64,000 nucleotides of DNA from Chlorokybus atmophyticus (lineage: Eukaryota; Plantae; Mesostigma and Chlorokybus algae). Within the stretch, counting starts at the first letter, position 1. The number at the start of each line of letters is the position of its first letter. The stretch lies in assembly GCA_009103225.1 (NCBI GenBank), contig RHPI01003389.1:1-64000 (forward strand). The letters run 5' to 3'. A program made the position numbers and the translations under genes. This document shows, one piece after another, positions 1-18,600 of this stretch. The notes beneath the pieces are model-generated. The model had not been told where the DNA came from and searched no databases. It saw only the letters and a program-made list of their open reading frames with translations.

Positions 1-2377
1 CGTTACCTGTGCCTGGGGATAGGGGAGTTGGTTTTGCTGACATGCAACAACAACAGAGTGGTGCTTGTTGGTTGATACTCACACACATGCACTCACACGC
101 GCAAAAACATGTACTCATCGTCTCACTATGCAACCCAATTGTGTCGCGCGTCTCTGGGAAGGGGGTGGGAGCAGCAGCGGTAGCAAGCAGGCACCTGAAT
201 CTGTTGTCGTTTTGTTGCATGCGGAAACACGTGCGACAACGACGACCACAAACCCACCACCAAAACAAACAAGCTCCTTTGCTTCCGCTGCTCATTATCC
301 TTTAATCCCAGGCATGCAACAGTATGCCGATCGGCGTCGTTCGTGTTCGTGCATGTACTGTACTCTGTAGAGCGTACACAATACGCTAGCTGACACAACA
401 TGCAGTGTGTGTACAGCGGGTTATATATGTAAGCGAGCGTGTCATGTACGCTCTCGTACCTCCAACGCACGCATCCCCGCCTTTCTCACACACACACGTG
501 TCCACCGCACAGCGTTTGTGCCAGTAACTCCGCAAGCCAAGCCAGGCCAAGCCTAGGCCCAGGCCTAGGCCTAGGCCTGGGTTTTGGCTTGGCTTGGCCC
601 AGTGTCCTCGCCAGTCTCAGCGACATGCATGCTATCGCTTTGCATGTGTTGCACCGCTTCATTCATGCCTGGCAGCCATGCTCGCGTGGCCGGCGGCGTC
701 GGTGGCGTCGGCGGCGGTCGGGGGGGCGCTGTCGCCGTGCTGCTCGCTGCTACCGCGCCTGCCTGACGGCAGCGCTCCACAAGCCGTAGTCGGCCGATCT
801 TGCCGTCGTCATACTCCTCCTCAACGACACCGCCGCCGCAGCCAGCATACCACCGCAGCTCAGCCTCCCCGCGCATGCAGCAGCGACGCCAACACCGACG
901 ACGACGCTCACAACAGCCGCAACCACAGCCACAACCTCACCAGCGTCACCCGCAGAGAGGCGTTGGTGGTAGGGCCCGCCGCGGCCGCTGGTTCTGAGGA
1001 GGAGGCGAAGGCGGCGGCGGCGGCGGCTTCGCCCACGTCGTCGTCCGCAGCCGTCACCACCACCACCTTGCCGATGGTAGGATTACTGAGAGTGGAGCAG
1101 TTGACATGGCCCAATCCGCACAGCAACAACTTCATCCGCGTCTGCATTCGACATCGCACTCTGGCGCAGCTGGAGCAAACGCCACCACGACCCGTTACCT
1201 GTGCCTGGGGATAGGGGAGTTGGTTTTGCTGACATGCAACAACAACAGAGTGGTGCTTGTTGGTTGATACTCACACATATGCACTCACACGCGCACACAC
1301 ACTGTACTGTACTCGTCGTCTCACTATGCAACCCAATTGTGTCGCGCGTCTCTGGGAAGGGGGTGGGAGCAGCAGCGGTAGCAAGCAGGCACCTGAATCT
1401 GTTGTCGTTGTGTTGCATGCGGAAACACGTGCAACAACGACGACCAGAAAACCACCACCAAAACCAACAAGCTCCTTTGCTTCCGCTGCTCATTATCCTT
1501 TGATCCCAGGCATATGGAACAGTATGCCGATCGGCTTCGTTCGTGTTCGTGCATGTACTGTACTCTGTAGAGCGTACACAATACGCTAGCTGACACAACA
1601 TGCAGCGTGTATACAGCGGGTTATATATGTGAGCGAGCGCGTAATGTACGCTCTCGTACCTCCAACGCACGCATCCCCGCCTTTCTCACACACACAAACA
1701 GTGCAATCAACTCAACTTCTCTGCCTACGCACACGTGTCCACTGCACAGAGTTCGTGCCAGTGACTCCGCAAGCCAAGCCAGGCCAAGCCTAGGCCCAGG
1801 CCTAGGCCTAGGCCTGGGTTTTGGCTTGGCTTGGCCCAGTGTCCTCGCCAGTCTCAGCGACATGCATGCTATCGCTTTGCATGTGTTGCACCGCTTCATT
1901 CATGCCTGGCAGCGGCCATGCTCGCGTGGCCGGCGGCGTCGGTGGCGTCGGCGGCGGTCGGGGGGGCACTGTCGCCGTGCTGCTCGCTGCTGCCACGCCT
2001 GCCTGACGGCAGCGCTCCACAAGCCGTAGTCGGCCGATCTTGCCGTCGTCATACTCCTCCTCAACGACACCGCCGCCGCAGCCAGCATACCACCGCAGCT
2101 CAGCCTCCCCGCGCGTGCAGCAGCGACGCCAACACCGACGACGCTCACAACAGCCGCAACCACAGCCACACAACCTCACCAGCGTCACCCGCAGAGAGGC
2201 GTTGCTGATAGGGCCCGCCGCGATAATGGCCGCCGCGGCCGCTGGTTCTGAGGAGGAGGCGAAGGCGGCGGCGGCGGCGGCTTCGCCCACGTCGTCGTCC
2301 GCAGCCGTCACCACCACCAACTTGCCGATGGTAGGATTACTGAGAGTGGAGCAGTTGACATGGCCCAATCCGCACAG
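1..2377. repeat. Tandem duplication (~1.2 kb unit) of the AKR upstream region and exon 1
   Basis: Sequence at 1 (cgttacctgtgcctggggatagg) recurs at 1193. Unit 1 ends at CACAG 1119-1123 and unit 2 at CACAG 2373-2377. The first unit is cut by the window edge. Confidence 0.95.
678..1076 (+). CDS. Orphan duplicated first exon of the AKR gene (plastid transit-peptide-like, 133 codons, intact GT donor)
   Basis: ATG678 MLAWPAASVASAAVGG...TRREALVVG...TLPM ends at donor gtagg (1077). It is near-identical to exon 1 of the copies at 1918 and 19242, and no exon 2 follows within its own unit. Confidence 0.75.
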
Positions 2378-5300
2378 TCATGTTGTGTCTGAGCCATTGA
2401 CTATCATCATCATCTCTGTCTTGTCTGTCTGACTGCTCCTGCTTTGCTGCCGTGTGAGACGTTCGTACGCTATTCGCTATCCGGTGCATTCTTTTCATTG
2501 CTGGACTCTCAAGCATTTCAGCATTCGCTGTGCCAATTACAGGCACATGCACGCTCATGGCTGGCTTCTGCAACCATCAATCAGAACCCAATCACCACTA
2601 CATTGGCTCAGGCAACAGCACAATCACTAGCACGCACGCACGCACGCATGGCAGCAAGGCACCGAAGGCAACGGGCTAACATACAGATCGCGATAGCAAG
2701 CACATACACACGCAAGCGCACAAGCACACGTGCACACGCACACGCACACGCACGAGCTGGTGCACACCCCCTCCCCCTCCCTCCCCACCCACCCACCCAC
2801 CCACCCACACACGCAGGTCCCCCCCGGCCTCCCCCTCTCCCCCTCGGGTCTCCTCCCCTCCGCGATCGTCAAGGGCTGCTGGCAGCTGTCGGGCGGGCAC
2901 AGGGGGGAGCGCGACACGGACAGGACCGCGGGGAGGGAGGCGGTCCAGGACTTTGAGAAGTTCGTGGAGGCTGGTGAGGGAGAGATGAGAGAGAGAATTG
3001 TTGGAGTGTGTGTGAGAGTGAGCGTGAGAGTGAGAGAGAAGAGGGGTTGATCGTGTGAGCTCGCTTGCGTGTGTGGGTGCGTACGTGTACATGTATGGTG
3101 TATACATGTATGGGGCACCAGTAGTAGTAGTCCTTGCTGCTGACTGCATGTGTTATGTAGACAGACTTGCAGTCCAACCAACGTCACTGTTGAGCAGAGC
3201 AGCACATACATGCACGCACGATCTCACACACCTCCCTCCCTCCCTGCCTGCACGCACGCATGCACGCATCTTCACACACACACACACACACACACACACC
3301 GCTCCTTCTTCCCAGGCATCACCACCTTCGACACCGCGGACATCTACGGCCCCTCCGAGTCCCTCATCGGCCGCTACCTATCCACTCTGAGAAAGAAGAG
3401 CGGCGTCGCGGTGTTCACCAAGATGTGTCTGTTCGGCCAGGACCAGGCGGACCCCACGTTCGAGTTCGTCAGGAGGAAGGTCGAGGGGAGCAGGGAGAGG
3501 ATGGGGGTGGAGAGGATCGACATGGTGCAGTTTTATTGGCAGGTGAGAGGAAAGGAGAGTGTGTGTGTGTGTGTGTGTGTCATGATGTGTGTGTCCCATC
3601 GCAGCATAGTTTCTGTCTGTTACTTGTATTGCAGTTTGTGACAGGCTTTGGTTGTTGTCGTGTTTGGATAACTCGTTTGTGTTGTTTGACTTGCTTGGCG
3701 TGCAGGGTGCTGCGCACTGCACTGTGTGTGTGTGCCGTGCTTGTTGACCGCATGTTGTGAGTGCAGCATACAAGCAACTGTGTATCAATAACTGCAACTA
3801 TGCATTCACTCAGTTGCATATGCAGACACGAGTCCGCTTGTCGATGCAAGTGTAGTGCACTGTCGGAACAGAACCTTGTGGTTGTGTCGTACTTTCACGT
3901 CACTGTCTGGTTCTCCCTCACTCTCTTTGTGCGTCTCAGGACTACTCCATCCCCAACTACGTGACGGCCGCCAAGCACCTGTCCACGCTGCAGGCGCAGG
4001 GCCGCATCCGCGCCATCGGCGTCACCAACTTCGACGTGCCGCGAATGCGGGAGATGATGGATGCAGGGGTGAAGATTGAAGCCGCGCAAGTAGGCGTGCA
4101 TGCGCGTGCGCGTGCATACGTGCGAGTGTGTGTGTGCGTGTGTGTGCATGTATGTGCTCATCCATTGTGTGCGTGCGTATACACATGTGCGTGCGCGTGC
4201 GCGCGTGTGTGTGTGTGTGTGTGTGTGTAGTTTATGTACAAGGGGTGTCCGTGCGTGCGTGTGCATGTGTGAGCACCTGCACGTATGTGTCATTGTTGTG
4301 TCACCAACAACATACCCACGTTCCCACCTGACATCCTTCGCTTGAAATCCAGGTTCAGTACTCCCTGTTGGACCGGCGTCCCGAGAACGGCATGGTGGAC
4401 TTTTGCCGTGAGAACAACGTCAAGCTGCTGCCGTATGGTGTTGTGGCCGGCGGCTTCCTCAGCGACAAGTACCTCGGCAAGACCTTCGCCGAGGCGCGCA
4501 AGGACATCAACACGTACAGCAAGCAGAAGTACGCGTCCGTCATAAACCAGGTGCGTGTGGTGGGTATAAGTCCGTTGGTATGGCAGGTGTGCGCATAGTT
4601 TACTCATGGCGGCAATGGTTGGTGCATGTGCCATGCCTGACTTCATTCGATGTACTATGTACTACTAGCATCAGCAAGCAGCAGATCTAGTGTGCACGTG
4701 GGCGCATATACGCACACGCCAGTGTATGCAGCGTGCTGATTCATGTAGAAAGAGCTGTATACGTGCGTGTGTGCGCGCACGCATACAGCGTCTTTCTACA
4801 GCGTGTAAATGTACATGATTCTACTGGGTATGCTCAGTTGCAACCCGCCACAATGTCTCACCTCACAAATGTCAACCTTACTCAGGTCGGCGCCTGGGAC
4901 TGGTTCCAGGATCTCCTTGGTGTCCTGAGAAGTGTGGCCGACCGTCACAACGCGAGCGTGTCGAACGTTGCAACGCGTTGGGTCCTGCAGCGTCCCTCTG
5001 GCGTCGTGGCCGCCGCGATCGTCGGGGCACGCAACGCCGCGCACGTCGACGACCACCGACGCGCGTTCGCGTTCGAGTTGAGCGAAGAGGATCTTGCGCG
5101 GATTGATGAGGTGTTGGAGAAGGGGAAGAGGCCGAGAGGGGATTGCTACACGTGGGAAAGGGGGGGAGTGTTCTGAGCGGGGAGCGAGTGTGTTTGGTGT
5201 TGTTGTTCGTGTTGGGTTTGGCACATGGCCTCGCCTTGATGTTGGGCCAGGTTGAGGCCTACATATGTAGTTCATTACTTTGTTTCTTTGAGCAAAGAGT

Positions 5301-13590: not shown

Positions 13591-14106
13591 ACCTGAGGCA
13601 ATCTGCGAACAGAACTACACTGTAACTCTCCGTCCAAAGACCCAATGCCCTATGTGTGTGGTTGTAACATATGCTGCATGTACCGCTTCCGCGAGCAATG
13701 CTTTGCAAGCACTGCTTGAAAAGCGAATTGGGCGCAAACCAAAAGCTGTTTCAGCGCCATGTAACACCATGCGATTCCATCACATCGCACAGGACAGGCC
13801 TTCGACTCAGCAAACCTGTGTGGCAGAGCCTTTGAAGGCACATCATCACGTACGTAAGTCTTTTGTTTGATGGATGCGTGGCCCCTGATGCCACTGTCGA
13901 TGCTTGGACGGACCTGAGCTCAGGCCTAAGAGAGTGAAGCCAGCCTTGGGTTGTGCTGAGAGAAAGAGAACAAGGCAGCAGCAGGTCAGGCTACTGAACA
14001 ATCCTAGACCAGAGTCGTAATGCACAGCGCCCACATCTTAGTGTTTACGCAGGGTTGGGGGTGTTCAATTTTACTCCTAACCTAGGTGTATCTTAGTTGG
14101 GGGTGT

Positions 14107-17005
14107 TCAACTGTTCCGTCTGCGCAGGGCCTCTGCATCGTCGTGCTTGCCCAGCTCGCACAGGACATGTGCCAGGTTGTTGAGGGACTTCGCGGTGTTG
14201 GGGTGGTCCGATCCCAGCTGCGCTTCGCAAATCGCCAGTGCCCGTCTGTGCAGGGCCTCAGCGTCGTCGAGCTTGCCCAGCTCGTAGAGGACAAGTGCCA
14301 GGTTGTTGAGGGACTTCGCGGTGTCGGGGTGGTCCAATCCCAGCTGCGCTTCGCGAATCGCCAGTGCCCGTCTGTGCAGGGCCTCAGCGTCGTCATGCTT
14401 GCCCAGCTCGCACAGGACAGATGCCAGGTTGTTGAGGGACTTCGCGGTGTTGGGGTGGTCCGATCCCAGCTGCGCTTCGCGAATAGCCAGTGCCCGTCTG
14501 TGCAGGGCCTCAGCGTCGTCGAGCTTGCCCAGCTCGCACAGGACAGATGCCAGGTTGTTGAGGGACGTCGCGGTGTCGGGGTGGTCCGATCCCAGCTTCG
14601 CTTCCCAAATAGCCAGTGCCCGTCTGTGCAGGGCCTCAGCGTCGTCGAGCTTGCCCAGCTCGCACAGGACATGTGCCAGGTCGTTGAGGGACGTCGCGGT
14701 GTCGGGGTGGTCCGATCCCAGCTGCGCTTCACAAATAGCCAGTGCCCGTCTGTGCAGAGCCTCAGCATCGTCGTGCTTGCCCAGCTCGCACAGGACATCT
14801 GCCAGGTTGTTGAGGGACTTCCCGGTGTCGGGGTGGTCCGATCCCAGCTTCGCTTCCGAAATAGCCAGTGCCCGTCTTAGCAGGGCCTCAGCCTTGCCGT
14901 ACCTGCCCTCGCATGTCAAGCAAGCGCCTTGCAAAGTCCACAGATGTGGCAAAAGTGTCATGTCTTGACATTCAACTTGCTGCAAGATGCGTTCACATCT
15001 GTGCAAGATACTCCAAGCCTTTGTTGTCTCATAGAGGACAATATAAAACTCCGCTAATGCCAGTGCAACATCAATGACCCGCTGCAAATAGTCCGCATCT
15101 AGCGGAACCTTGATCCCGCTGGGGTCACCACCCTCTGGCAAAGCCATGGACACTGCATACGCAAAGTGTTCCGTGTCTTGTCCAACCTTGCCCACTTCAG
15201 CGATAGCCAGAACCGCAGCCTGGGCGATCTGGACTCCCTCTTTCTTGCCATCCCATCTGCCAAAACTCTGCACCAGCGGGTGGAAAGCTATCCCTGCATC
15301 GAGAGTCCGCTCCGCTAATGCATACTTGTTGAGCAGTCCAGCCGCAACGTGGATATTATCAATGCTAACATCCTTCGCCAGCAATGTACAGGCAGCCTGT
15401 TTCAATAGGTCCAACCGTATTGGAGCTGCAGCAAACCATCCACCCAATCTCAATACGATTCTGGCCAAAGCAACTGCCTGAGGTGGATGTCTGGCATCAC
15501 TCAACATCATCTCCATACTCGTAGCAAACAAAGTTGTTAGATGCGGGCTAGTTTGGAATTCGGGGTCATCCAGTTCCTGGTTGAAGATCTCAACACCTTC
15601 AGTGTCAAGCAGGTTCAAGACCCACTCCGGGCCGCTCCCATACTCATGCATCAGCTTAGCAGAAACTGATAGGGATAAAGCATGGCACCCTAGAGCCACA
15701 GCCAGCTCCTTGACCTTTGCATCGGGAGTCTCTGGCGGCAAACCCGATTTGAGCAATTGACACGCATACATCTCTTCAAGGTTCTTCAGCTCCAGGAGGC
15801 CTTGGCTGGTTGAATACATGCGCTGACGGGCAGTCAGTATGACATGGCAAGGGCCTTCCCGCGGCAGGTATCCCGGATACTGATGCTCGTCATCCACGTT
15901 GTCTAACACCAGGAGACAAGGGGTTTCAGACTGTTCAAGCGCTGTCCGGATCGTCAATACACCATCTCGGTTCGGGTCCCGCACACTCGAATGCATCGTC
16001 CCAGACCTGTCATGAAAGGGTCTTTACCAAGCGTACCACATTAACAGTTTACATAAGCATCATAATCTTGCTCAAAGCTAGCAAACGCTCTTACCCGGTG
16101 TCGACAGCGCCTAGGCTGATGCCCAGCGGAGCTGCCAACCCAAGGAAGTTAACCTGCAACAAGTCTTTGCTGGCGGCAATCCAGAGCAGTTTGTCGTATT
16201 GGTTTTTATGGCTATAAGCGTACTTCAACGCCAGGTGCGTCTTGCCGGAACCCCCCATGCCTTGGATGCAGACACAGCCACATTCATCTTTCAGCATGTT
16301 CTTCAGCTCTGTCATCTCTTGGCTCCTTCCAATGAAGAGCTTTTTGTCACGATATGGCACCGTGTTGACTCTCTTTCCTGTTGTGCAGACTCGTCTGAGC
16401 CTCTTGCAAACTTTTTGCACAATCGAATCCACATAGGTGTCCTCGTAATTGTCATGTTTTGACATAACGTCCATGCATACAACCGCGAGCTCACAAATCA
16501 CTTGCGTCCAGTCCGCTTCATTCATGCCGCATTTTGTCCACAGCTGCCCCCCGTGATGCTCCCAGGCTGTACCTACTGCAAGCATAGACACACATACGCA
16601 TGACAAACAGACTTGAGGACCGACTTGTTTATCCCCGTGAATAATCGGTATACCTTTCTTGTTCTTGATCGCCTCTGCATCTATGTCATCAGGAGTGATA
16701 TGGTAACAGGCTGGCATGCAGTTTCCTCGATCCAGAAACACTCGCAGCTCCTTCATGCACCAGTAGCTCTCAAAGAACTGCGGAGACAACACCACGATGC
16801 CGCATTTCGCCGTTCGCATGGCTGAGTCCATTTCCACAGAAGAAAGATCTCCCATACAGAGTATCCTGTCGTCGAAGAACACCCGCAGCTTCTGCTTCTT
16901 AAGCTCGCGGTTCAGCCATGCGCTGAATGTCCTCTTTGTGTCCGGACCCCGATGACAGAGAAACACGTCGTAACCTTCTTCCCGAGTTGCTTGCTGTGCA
17001 GCCAT
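14107..17005 (-). CDS. TIR-NB-ARC-TPR (TNP-type NLR) protein
   Basis: Exons 17005-16654, 16572-16095 and 16006-14107, all GT-AG and in frame. TIR: YDVFLCHRGPDTKRTF...SYWCMKEL. Walker A GMGGSGKT, Walker B CLLVLDNVDD, GGWFAAAPI and FHPLVQ. These are followed by five full 42-aa TPR repeats and one truncated repeat. Confidence 0.93.
14117..14880 (-). repeat. Coding tandem repeat, 126-bp unit (42-aa TPR, LGSDHPDTA.SLNNLA.VLCELGK.DDAEALHRRALAI.EAQ)
   Basis: About six near-identical 126-bp units are visible directly in the DNA. Confidence 0.97.
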
Positions 17006-17099
17006 GAATCCACGGCAAGCCTCGAGTCACCACCACCACCAGCGGTGCTGCAGCAGCACCAAGTCGAAGTGATACTAGTGAGGGTATCCAACTACAAGC

Positions 17100-17171
17100 C
17101 TGCAGTCAGTGGTTTGAAGCAGAGCAGCCGAGCACAACGCAGCGCAGTGGATTGTGAAAACAGAAGCATAC
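17100..17171 (-). promoter_or_regulatory. Predicted 72-bp 5'-UTR intron of the TNP gene
   Basis: Donor AG|gtatgc and branch-like ctgac immediately before cag|. The spliced upstream frame stops before ATG17005. Confidence 0.55.
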
Positions 17172-17274
17172 CTCTTTCCGGAAGACCAGCTCGACCGCCG
17201 AGCTGTCCTTCCCAAACTTCGCCCGCCGCCCCCGCCGCCGCCGCCGCCGCAAACCATCAATCCATGGCGTGGAG

Positions 17275-17375
17275 ATTGCAAAGGTTGTTCATCGAGGCGG
17301 TGAGGAGCATTGTGGAGGAGGGGAGAGTGAGGGCGGCGGTGACGAAAGTCATGGACTTTTGGAGGGAGGTGAGAG
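17275..17375 (+). pseudogene. Remnant of a paralogous MDR/ADH penultimate exon
   Basis: EAVRSIVEEGRVRAAVTKVMDFWRE|gtgag matches LRRLVEEGRIKPAVTRVMDFWRG|gtgag at ~10265-10340. Confidence 0.8.
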
Positions 17376-17469
17376 ATGTGCGTGCGTGCGTGTGTGTACG
17401 CAGAGTAGTTGAGATTGCTTGCGCTTGGCATAGAGTGTTTCGTTATGGTTAACTATACCATATAGTCAA

Positions 17470-18600
17470 AAACAGCCCCAGCACAGCCTCCTCAAACTCA
17501 TGCTCAACGACTGACTGCATGGATACAAAATAGTGTGGTGTACCCGCCCCCGCGCGCAGTAGTAGTTGCACATTGCACTGTATGTGCGCGCAGACGTACG
17601 CAGTGCCATGCACCACTCGATGTCCTCCCAGCACGCCCTCTCGGTAACAATCGGCGAAGAGGGGGAGAGAGGGGATGTGTGTGTGTGAGGAGGGAGGGAG
17701 AGACAGAGAGAGGGTGCAGATGGGGCCGTAGAGGATGTGGGCGTTGGCGAACGGGTCCGACCTGCATACAAGTTGGGGATGTGTTGGGTATGATCGGGGT
17801 GCATACCGCATAACGCATGAGCGACGACGCACCTCGCGTTGAGTGTCCGTAGAAGTCGTGGTAACCGCTGATGATCGAGTCTCCAGCTGAGATGGTCATG
17901 CCAGCAATGACCACTTCGAAGAATGTTGTGTTTGTTTTGCTGTTTAAGTGCGCAGCCACCATGGCCTTCACTCAGCCGCTATTGAGTTGTATGTTCACAC
18001 TTGTTGCTGTTGTTGTCACCTTCCCCCCCCACGACTAACAACAAGAATAAGAAGAGCAGCACGTGTCTCGCATATCAACACACACACCACTGCACGTCCG
18101 TGAAGCACACGATGGATGACCACGTCCTTGTTGTTGGGATTGAGAAGGGATTCGCATCGTTGACGCGCTCCTCCCCACCAACGAAGCGGAGAGGTGTCTT
18201 CGATGAAGGATTGGATGGACGGCTGGCAGAGCCTGTGTGAGGAGTTTGGTGTGGAGAAATGAGTTACTAGCCTCCTGCTGTGTGCAGGAGAGTGTGTGTA
18301 TGAGCGTGCGCGTGCGCGTGCATGTGCGCGCGCGTGTGTGCGCATGTGTGGGTCTGTCTGCGCGTGCGTCAATGTGTGTGCGCGTGTGTGTCTGTTCACG
18401 TGCGTGCTAGTGCGTGCAGGCCGTATCTCGCATGACACACACCTGTCAACAACCTCCACCCCTCTGACTTGCTGTCCCACGACGACAACCACCACAGCAA
18501 CAACTTCATGCGCGTCTGCATTTGACATCGCACTCTGGCGCAGCTGGAGTAAACGCCACCACGACCCGTTACCTGTGCCTGGGGATAGGGGAGTTGGTTT
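17470..18600 (-). pseudogene. Decayed unknown gene, copy 2
   Basis: Contains GYHDFYG, DPFANAHILYGP, WEDIEWCMALRTSAR and SVVEHEFEEAV; colinear with 11470-12800. Confidence 0.45.

Follow-up and report, generated by a model that had tools for sequence, protein, structure and literature searches.

TNPs, receptors that combine a TIR, an NB-ARC and a TPR part, are the most widespread TIR proteins in plants. In land plants they are also called XTNX and are represented by Arabidopsis TN17 (At4g23440) and TN21 (At5g56220), ZmTNP-IIa and the Marchantia TNP, all with the same TIR - NB-ARC - TPR order. Their genes have been described as mostly intronless, low-copy and conservatively evolving (PMC5662649), the NB-ARC motifs listed for them are Walker A, RNBS-B TTR, Walker B, GLPL and MHD (PMC9806590), and ZmTNP-IIa causes a cell death that is both TIR- and P-loop-dependent. 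Their origin has been placed in land plants (Zhang et al. 2017; Johanndrees et al. 2023; a 2026 review), with Chlorokybus unsampled in each of these studies, and in algae by the 2022 preprint of Chia et al., which dealt with the TNP family of TIR-NBARC-TPR receptors. Here we describe a gene of this architecture from the streptophyte alga Chlorokybus atmophyticus, located at 14107-17005 on the minus strand of a 64,000-nucleotide stretch of contig RHPI01003389.1 (the window), and report as direct observations its sequence and architecture, how it is spliced and transcribed, and where it falls in phylogenetic trees. We conclude, with a probability of roughly three in four, that it is a functional, transcribed gene for a STAND-type (signal transduction ATPase with numerous domains) receptor of 910 residues, and that its small family and similar genes on eukaryote-like contigs make up an algal lineage that is sister or stem to the TNPs of land plants.

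Other described systems share parts of this design. Bacterial TIR-NB-ARC(DUF7779)-TPR STANDs (the FxSxx-COOH system, Avs-like) have the same three-domain architecture as the algal protein. Plant TIR-type nucleotide-binding receptors (TIR-NLRs; RPP1, ROQ1, RUN1, L6) share with it the TIR fold, the catalytic Glu and the NB-ARC fold, but those with leucine-rich repeats (LRRs), the TNLs, sense through an LRR (plus C-JID) part and not through TPRs. Fungal NB-ARC/NACHT-TPR NLRs resemble it in their near-identical C-terminal repeats, which vary at few positions, but carry other N-terminal effector domains (HET and others).

The gene and its transcript

The locus is a real, transcribed and spliced gene. 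Two open reading frames (ORFs) underlie it, 16091-17005(-) and 14107-15996(-), and Pfam matches on both comprised TIR_2 (2.5e-15), TIR (5e-14), the P-loop part of NB-ARC (2e-6), TPR_12 (9e-116) and TPR_10. The evidence for splicing consisted of spliced contigs from the RNA libraries X1 and X2, and Pfam, the spliced coding sequence (CDS) and the RNA joints together established that the domains follow each other as TIR, NB-ARC and TPR within one polypeptide. The parts of the gene are as follows.

14107-17005, minus strand: TIR + NB-ARC + TPR gene; intact CDS of 910 codons in three exons, joined via two GT..AG introns
17048-17171, minus strand: intron in the 5' untranslated region (5'UTR); 124 nt, GT..AG; joint of 17047 to 17172 in X1 and X2, short side 30 nt
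16654-17005, minus strand: CDS exon 1, from the ORF and sequence; ATG at 17003-17005; covers the strands and helices of the TIR through alpha-C, Glu86 included
16576-16653, minus strand: CDS intron 1; 78 nt, GT..AG, phase 1, within the TIR; joint of 16575 to 16654 in X1 and X2 RNA contigs
16095-16575, minus strand: CDS exon 2; TIR alpha-D/E region, linker and P-loop
16007-16094, minus strand: CDS intron 2; 88 nt, GT..AG, phase 2, between P-loop and Walker B; 88-nt skip in X1 and X2
14107-16006, minus strand: CDS exon 3; rest of the NB-ARC, then the TPR array; ends with the stop codon (14107-14109)

The RNA contig runs unbroken across 16654-17047. Pieces of the X1 contigs differed from the window by 0-3 mismatches per 285-491 nt, a rate that agrees better with an origin from this locus, or from its allele in another strain, than from the 95%-identical paralogue. 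The original prediction, which was made from the DNA letters, had described an intact three-exon gene with TIR, P-loop and TPR parts; the three-exon CDS stands, but the transcript has more exons, given the 5'UTR intron. Its 81-nt intron 1, with the protein reading KKGTAW at the junction, had to be replaced, as the RNA joints give 78 nt, with an acceptor 3 nt away, and a protein that reads KKVGTAWEHHGG. Expression and both CDS introns, which it had left to RNA data to confirm, are supported by the spliced contigs of X1 and X2.

Several further RNA features lie around the CDS. An X1 contig covers 17573-17759 and 17831-18016 on the minus strand, separated by a 71-nt GT..AG intron, and represents either a further 5' exon of the gene or a separate upstream transcript. 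Just 3' of the stop codon, a single X1 contig skips 126 nt at 13955-14082 (CT..AC on the plus strand, short side 28 nt), which may be an intron in the 3'UTR. An X2 contig that differs from the window at ~1.8% of positions lacks 5 nt at 15967, a deletion that, if real, would cause a frameshift near the start of exon 3; this contig probably stems from another strain, species or paralogue. An Rfam scan of the window gave no matches.

The gene corresponds to JGI Chlorokybus atmophyticus model Chlat1 8932 / Chrsp94S08327, which came up in a word-index search, is 99.7% identical to the spliced model and bears out that the host is an alga, as had been supposed; the window is accordingly assigned to C. 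atmophyticus CCAC 0220. Compared with the RNA-based model, Chrsp94S08327 is longer by 121 residues at its N-terminus and lacks 32 residues internally. We rejected both the extension and the gap. The extension (window 16990-17971, minus strand) needs a mini-intron that was not seen in the RNA contigs and cannot join the TIR in frame, because the RNA-supported splice sets the upstream ORF in another frame; the gap, which deletes the GGWF region, is a spurious intron with no RNA support. An in-frame TGA at 17027-17029 precedes the ATG at 17005 by eight codons, and the homologues in a 28-sequence alignment all begin ~10 residues ahead of the DVF motif.

A TNP-type TIR domain

The TIR spans residues 11 to about 178, the alignment with the RUN1 TIR reaching residue 178, and contains the following motifs.

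16748-16750, minus strand: Glu86 of SYWCMKEL; GAG codon, where TIR NADases have their catalytic glutamate
16538-16564, minus strand: WEHHGGQLW, TNP-type TIR motif; residues 122-130 in the alpha-D region, where RUN1 has GSFGEAF

Glu86, already singled out in the original prediction, aligns with the Glu of WCLDEL in the solved TIR structures of AT1G72930, RPV1 and RUN1 and is invariant among the 28 algal and land-plant TNP-type sequences of the alignment; by this criterion it is a predicted catalytic-type glutamate. The second motif distinguishes TNP-type TIRs from others. Among 153 sequences examined, the pattern ..G.[IVA]WE.HGG.LW was limited to algal TIR-NB-TPR proteins and land-plant TNPs, and W-E-x-H-G-G-x-L-W was found neither in TNL TIRs nor in the algal TIR-NB-LRR clade. 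The original prediction had pointed to a resemblance to TNP signatures in this motif, which it took to follow the TIR, and in GGWFAAAPI. The likeness stands, in that the TNPs of Marchantia, Riccia and Panicum carry both ...RG.[IL]WE.HGG.LW and GGWF..PIP. A separate "post-TIR domain" was rejected, since the alignment with alpha-D/E of the RUN1 TIR extends as far as residue ~178, which places the motif inside the TIR. GGWF..PIP was likewise rejected as a TNP signature, since bacterial NB-TPRs carry GGWF..P[IV] also. At its start the TIR has the canonical DVFLCHRGPDTK, where land-plant TNPs show CDV[FY]IG.HG instead.

NB-ARC, TPR array and predicted structure

The Walker A and B motifs and the MHD-like FHPLVQ, all named in the original prediction, were located in the spliced protein together with the GGWF segment and the repeat array.

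16238-16261, minus strand: Walker A, GMGGSGKT; G226, G228 and K229 invariant in the 28-sequence alignment
15889-15915, minus strand: Walker B, LLVLDNVDD, from sequence; its Asp invariant in the 28-sequence alignment
15418-15444, minus strand: GGWFAAAPI, from sequence
15268-15285, minus strand: FHPLVQ (FHP, MHD-like), from sequence
14116-14892, minus strand: TPR_12/TPR_10 repeat array; 6.2 copies of 126 nt (42 aa), 93% matches (Tandem Repeats Finder, TRF)

The NB-ARC also carries HVILTAR, so that RNBS-B reads TAR and not TTR, and LGCHALSL at the GLPL position. The TPR array is presumed to be the sensor part, and amino acid variation among its repeats is centred on repeat positions 12, 28, 32 and 35. 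There are nine TPR repeats in the 95%-identical paralogue, three more than in this gene, and this difference in number suggests unequal recombination or concerted evolution.

An AlphaFold2 (AF2) model of residues 1-625 of that paralogue (pLDDT 84, pTM 0.73) found its best solved-structure match in the TIR-NLR RPP1, followed by the NB-ARC proteins NRC, Apaf-1 and CED-4; the best AFDB clusters include AAA+ ATPase / TIR-NBS-like entries at TM 0.57-0.65 (organisms not shown). By Atlas language-model features, a streptophyte TIR/NB-ARC/WHD cluster ranked top, with bacterial TIR-NB-TPR clusters close behind (0.96-0.97).

Phylogenetic placement

Both domains were placed by trees, with support given as ultrafast bootstrap (UFBoot)/SH-aLRT. 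In the maximum-likelihood NB-ARC tree (79 rows, 357 columns, LG+C20 PMSF), the land-plant TNPs (100/100) and the algal sequences formed a clade at 100/98, with an 18-row algal clade including Chlorokybus at 99/96; the sister, at 99/96, was the nearest NB-TPR clade, whose sole labelled member is bacterial. Forcing bacterial with land-plant or bacterial with algal sequences cost 17.3 log-likelihood units (approximately unbiased (AU) test, p = 0.036 and 0.033), a rejection of the alternative groupings that is significant but not overwhelming. The NB-ARCs of TNLs were too distant for the NB threshold.

The unrooted TIR tree was a polytomy that separated just the TNL TIRs from the rest and did not resolve the TNP-versus-TNL affinity of the algal TIR. 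Being a polytomy, it did not polarise the relationship, which was settled only with a bacterial outgroup, namely 14 TIRs of bacterial TIR-NB-TPR proteins. In the rooted tree, whose algal TIRs came from Chlorokybus, from JGI TNP-like proteins and from a 12-row clade including one TIR-NB-ARC-LRR protein, the land-plant TNP and algal TIRs grouped at 96/81 and the land-plant TNL TIRs (100/98) lay outside. The TIRs of the bacterial TIR-NB-TPR proteins formed a distant clade (100/100) and scored 21-40 bits against a plant/algal TIR profile.

The TIR and NB-ARC trees are congruent, and in neither is the domain of this gene nested among bacterial sequences; both join it to TNPs and not to bacterial STANDs or TNLs, as the original prediction had anticipated. 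Its assignment to the TNP lineage is thus upheld by both domain trees and the shared alpha-D motif, but its label of "land-plant type" is not, several features of land-plant TNPs being absent. The gene belongs to a sister or stem lineage that is not nested in the land-plant TNPs. Long stem branches lead to the latter (1.1-1.2 substitutions per site in the TIR tree, 0.86 in the NB-ARC tree), and the algal proteins look less derived.

Paralogues and relatives

At least six TIR-NBARC-TPR genes and one TN gene are present in Chlorokybus. Among the paralogues, Chrsp35S05191 is 95% identical, Chrsp231S03547 and Chrsp235S03604 are 63-65% identical and Chrsp102S00938 is truncated.

Relatives were sought with HMMER, residues 1-625 serving as the query in an exhaustive search of 1.84 billion cluster representatives. 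The Chlorokybus paralogues ranked first, then proteins from eukaryote-like JGI/Logan contigs and then land-plant TNPs, all ahead of bacterial-labelled proteins. The second set consists of collinear TIR-NB-TPR proteins with 37-41% identity, which have been found nowhere but in JGI samples 3300060284/5 and in Logan assemblies. The third set (Marchantia paleacea, Riccia fluitans, Adiantum, Panicum and Spirodela) holds the best named matches outside Chlorokybus, and we call these proteins TNPs because they have the TNP layout and TNP motifs. Further labelled matches were bacterial NB-TPRs (a deltaproteobacterial metagenome-assembled genome, Herbidospora, Saccharimonadales) and TNLs (Linum L6, a Cryptomeria RPV1-like protein and a Centaurea protein); there were no fungal-labelled sequences among the nearest HMMER matches. 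A word-index search with the NB-ARC region returned no land-plant TNPs, which is a limit of its sensitivity, as HMMER did retrieve them.

The contigs from JGI 3300060284/5 look eukaryotic, in that gene calls on them are sparse, short and without Pfam matches. They (L001, L002, L004, L005) carry an expanded, mostly single-ORF TIR-NB-TPR family with 37-51% identity among its members and to Chlorokybus, in addition to genes for TIR-NB and TIR-NB-LRR proteins; L004 has a TIR/AAA ORF (234-1418) and an ARC-TPR ORF (1733-4414) that resemble one split gene. A contig from the Logan assembly SRR23617307 (L003:2860-6210) encodes a 1116-aa TIR-NB-ARC-LRR protein with plant-type LRRs, whose TIR groups in the TNP/algal TIR clade, outside the land-plant TNL TIRs.

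Relation to land-plant TNPs and to bacterial receptors

Land-plant TNPs are collinear with the algal protein, with 25-30% identity over ~600 residues, and the two have in common the catalytic Glu, W-E-x-H-G-G-x-L-W, the P-loop, Walker B, GGWF..P[IV] and an FH-type MHD. A number of differences and uncertainties weigh against a sister or stem relationship. The algal protein has no N-terminal extension, its TIR beginning at residue 11 as opposed to residues 160-340 in land-plant TNPs, and it has neither their low-complexity insertion of 100-200 residues, which lies between the F.GR..EL motif and the P-loop, nor the DWWDG insertion that follows Walker B in them; it shows TAR where they have TTR, and its TPRs are canonical TPR_12 repeats like those of bacteria, whereas theirs are degenerate and barely detectable with Pfam. 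The AU p-values are only ~0.03, for groups that were named after the tree had been seen. The algal TIR set includes TIRs fused to NB-ARC-LRR, and its base is weakly resolved (90/52). A land-plant TNP NB-ARC profile gives the gene 125 bits and bacterial NB-TPRs 105-164 bits, so that similarity in the NB-ARC by itself barely separates them. To these points must be added a published cell-death assay in which the TIR construct of this gene was negative, discussed below. Beyond the protein, the algal gene has two CDS introns, where XTNX genes are mostly intronless, and its family is multi-copy with near-identical repeats, where land-plant TNPs are low-copy and conserved.

These observations raise the question of whether the gene might belong to an independent eukaryotic branch of the bacterial-type TIR-NB-ARC-TPR STANDs (FxSxx-COOH/Avs-like), separately inherited or acquired via horizontal transfer, with the TNP architecture having arisen in parallel. 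Bacterial STANDs do share canonical TPR_10/TPR_12 arrays, GGWF..PIP and similar NB-ARC scores with the algal protein; bacterial clusters of the same architecture (TIR + NB-ARC + TPR_10/12) come almost equal to the streptophyte cluster in language-model features, NB-ARC profile scores fail to split algal from bacterial proteins, and the canonical TPR_12 repeats of the gene are similar to bacterial ones. However, the bacterial TIRs are very distant, the bacterial NB-ARCs fall outside the algal and land-plant clade, a grouping that both the NB-ARC tree and the AU tests favour, and W-E-x-H-G-G-x-L-W is common to the algal proteins and the land-plant TNPs only. Moreover, the algal gene has several paralogues and spliceosomal introns, which the bacterial genes lack. 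We therefore consider a separate bacterial-type branch unlikely.

Published assays and proposed function

Chia et al. 2024 (Plant Cell) listed jgi|Chlat1|8932|Chrsp94S08327 as an NLR of the type (TIR)(NBARC)(TPR), with five sister genes, and assayed five Chlorokybus TIR-eYFP fusions for the hypersensitive response (HR) in Nicotiana benthamiana. Chrsp35S05191 and Chrsp5S06988 were positive; the Chrsp94S08327 construct gave no HR, and Chrsp235S03604 and Chrsp35S05232 were also negative. According to the construct table of that study, the Chrsp94S08327 construct opens with the codons MVAAHLNSK..., which belong to the RNA-unsupported JGI extension, and the fragment fell in a different structure cluster (324 vs 4). 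Chia et al. also reported that EDS1-dependent TIR-eYFP fusions all lost HR as E-to-A mutants, in a text without Chlorokybus gene ids, and the three EDS1-independent TIRs named there are from Ginkgo and Physcomitrium, none from Chlorokybus.

Given these results, the gene might be a TNP relative whose TIR, in this copy, is inactive or non-executing, or whose role is non-immune, such as in stress or developmental signalling, a kind of role that land-plant TNPs may have too. The negative result with Chrsp94S08327 TIR-eYFP would fit such a role, as would the fact that full-length land-plant TNPs mostly trigger no cell death. Yet the negative construct began with an extension that RNA-supported splicing cannot join in frame, and the TIR of this gene differs by three residues from that of the HR-positive paralogue Chrsp35S05191, with Glu86 and the NB-ARC motifs intact. 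The wrong start may thus account for the negative score of this TIR beside the positive score of its paralogue, and we regard an inactive or non-immune copy as less likely still than a separate bacterial-type branch.

For a functional receptor of the TNP lineage, we reason from the homologous TNLs, ZmTNP-IIa and Avs/STAND proteins of bacteria and propose that the TPR array would bind a ligand, upon which the NB-ARC would swap ADP for ATP and oligomerise. The clustered TIRs would then form NAD+-cleaving sites using Glu86, and the outcome would be nucleotide signals, NAD+ depletion or both, together with cell death. A ligand, the oligomerisation and the NADase activity of this protein in the alga are what we infer by analogy from these systems.

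Implications for the TNP family

Neither the gene nor the idea of an algal TNP is new, both being already published, and the value of the present analysis is confirmatory, because the 2022 preprint made the point and the published NLR catalogue contains the gene. What is added here are congruent, outgroup-rooted domain trees, a diagnostic alpha-D motif, a list of absent land-plant features and a corrected gene model; the RNA-backed correction, which includes the start codon, is the added value for the gene itself.

The Chlorokybus family puts the age of the TNP lineage at least at streptophytes and bears on the origin of EDS1-independent TIR signalling. We tentatively suggest, as a possibility that we would rate below even odds, that Chlorokybus-type proteins keep the ancestral TNP state, with a canonical TIR, a short linker and a concertedly evolving array of canonical TPR_12 repeats in multi-copy, fast-diversifying sensors, and that land-plant TNPs are a derived, low-copy remnant with degenerate TPRs. 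If this is true, algae would already have been shuffling TIR-NLR architectures before land plants arose, given that a TNP-type TIR also occurs in fusion with NB-ARC-LRR on algal-like contigs.

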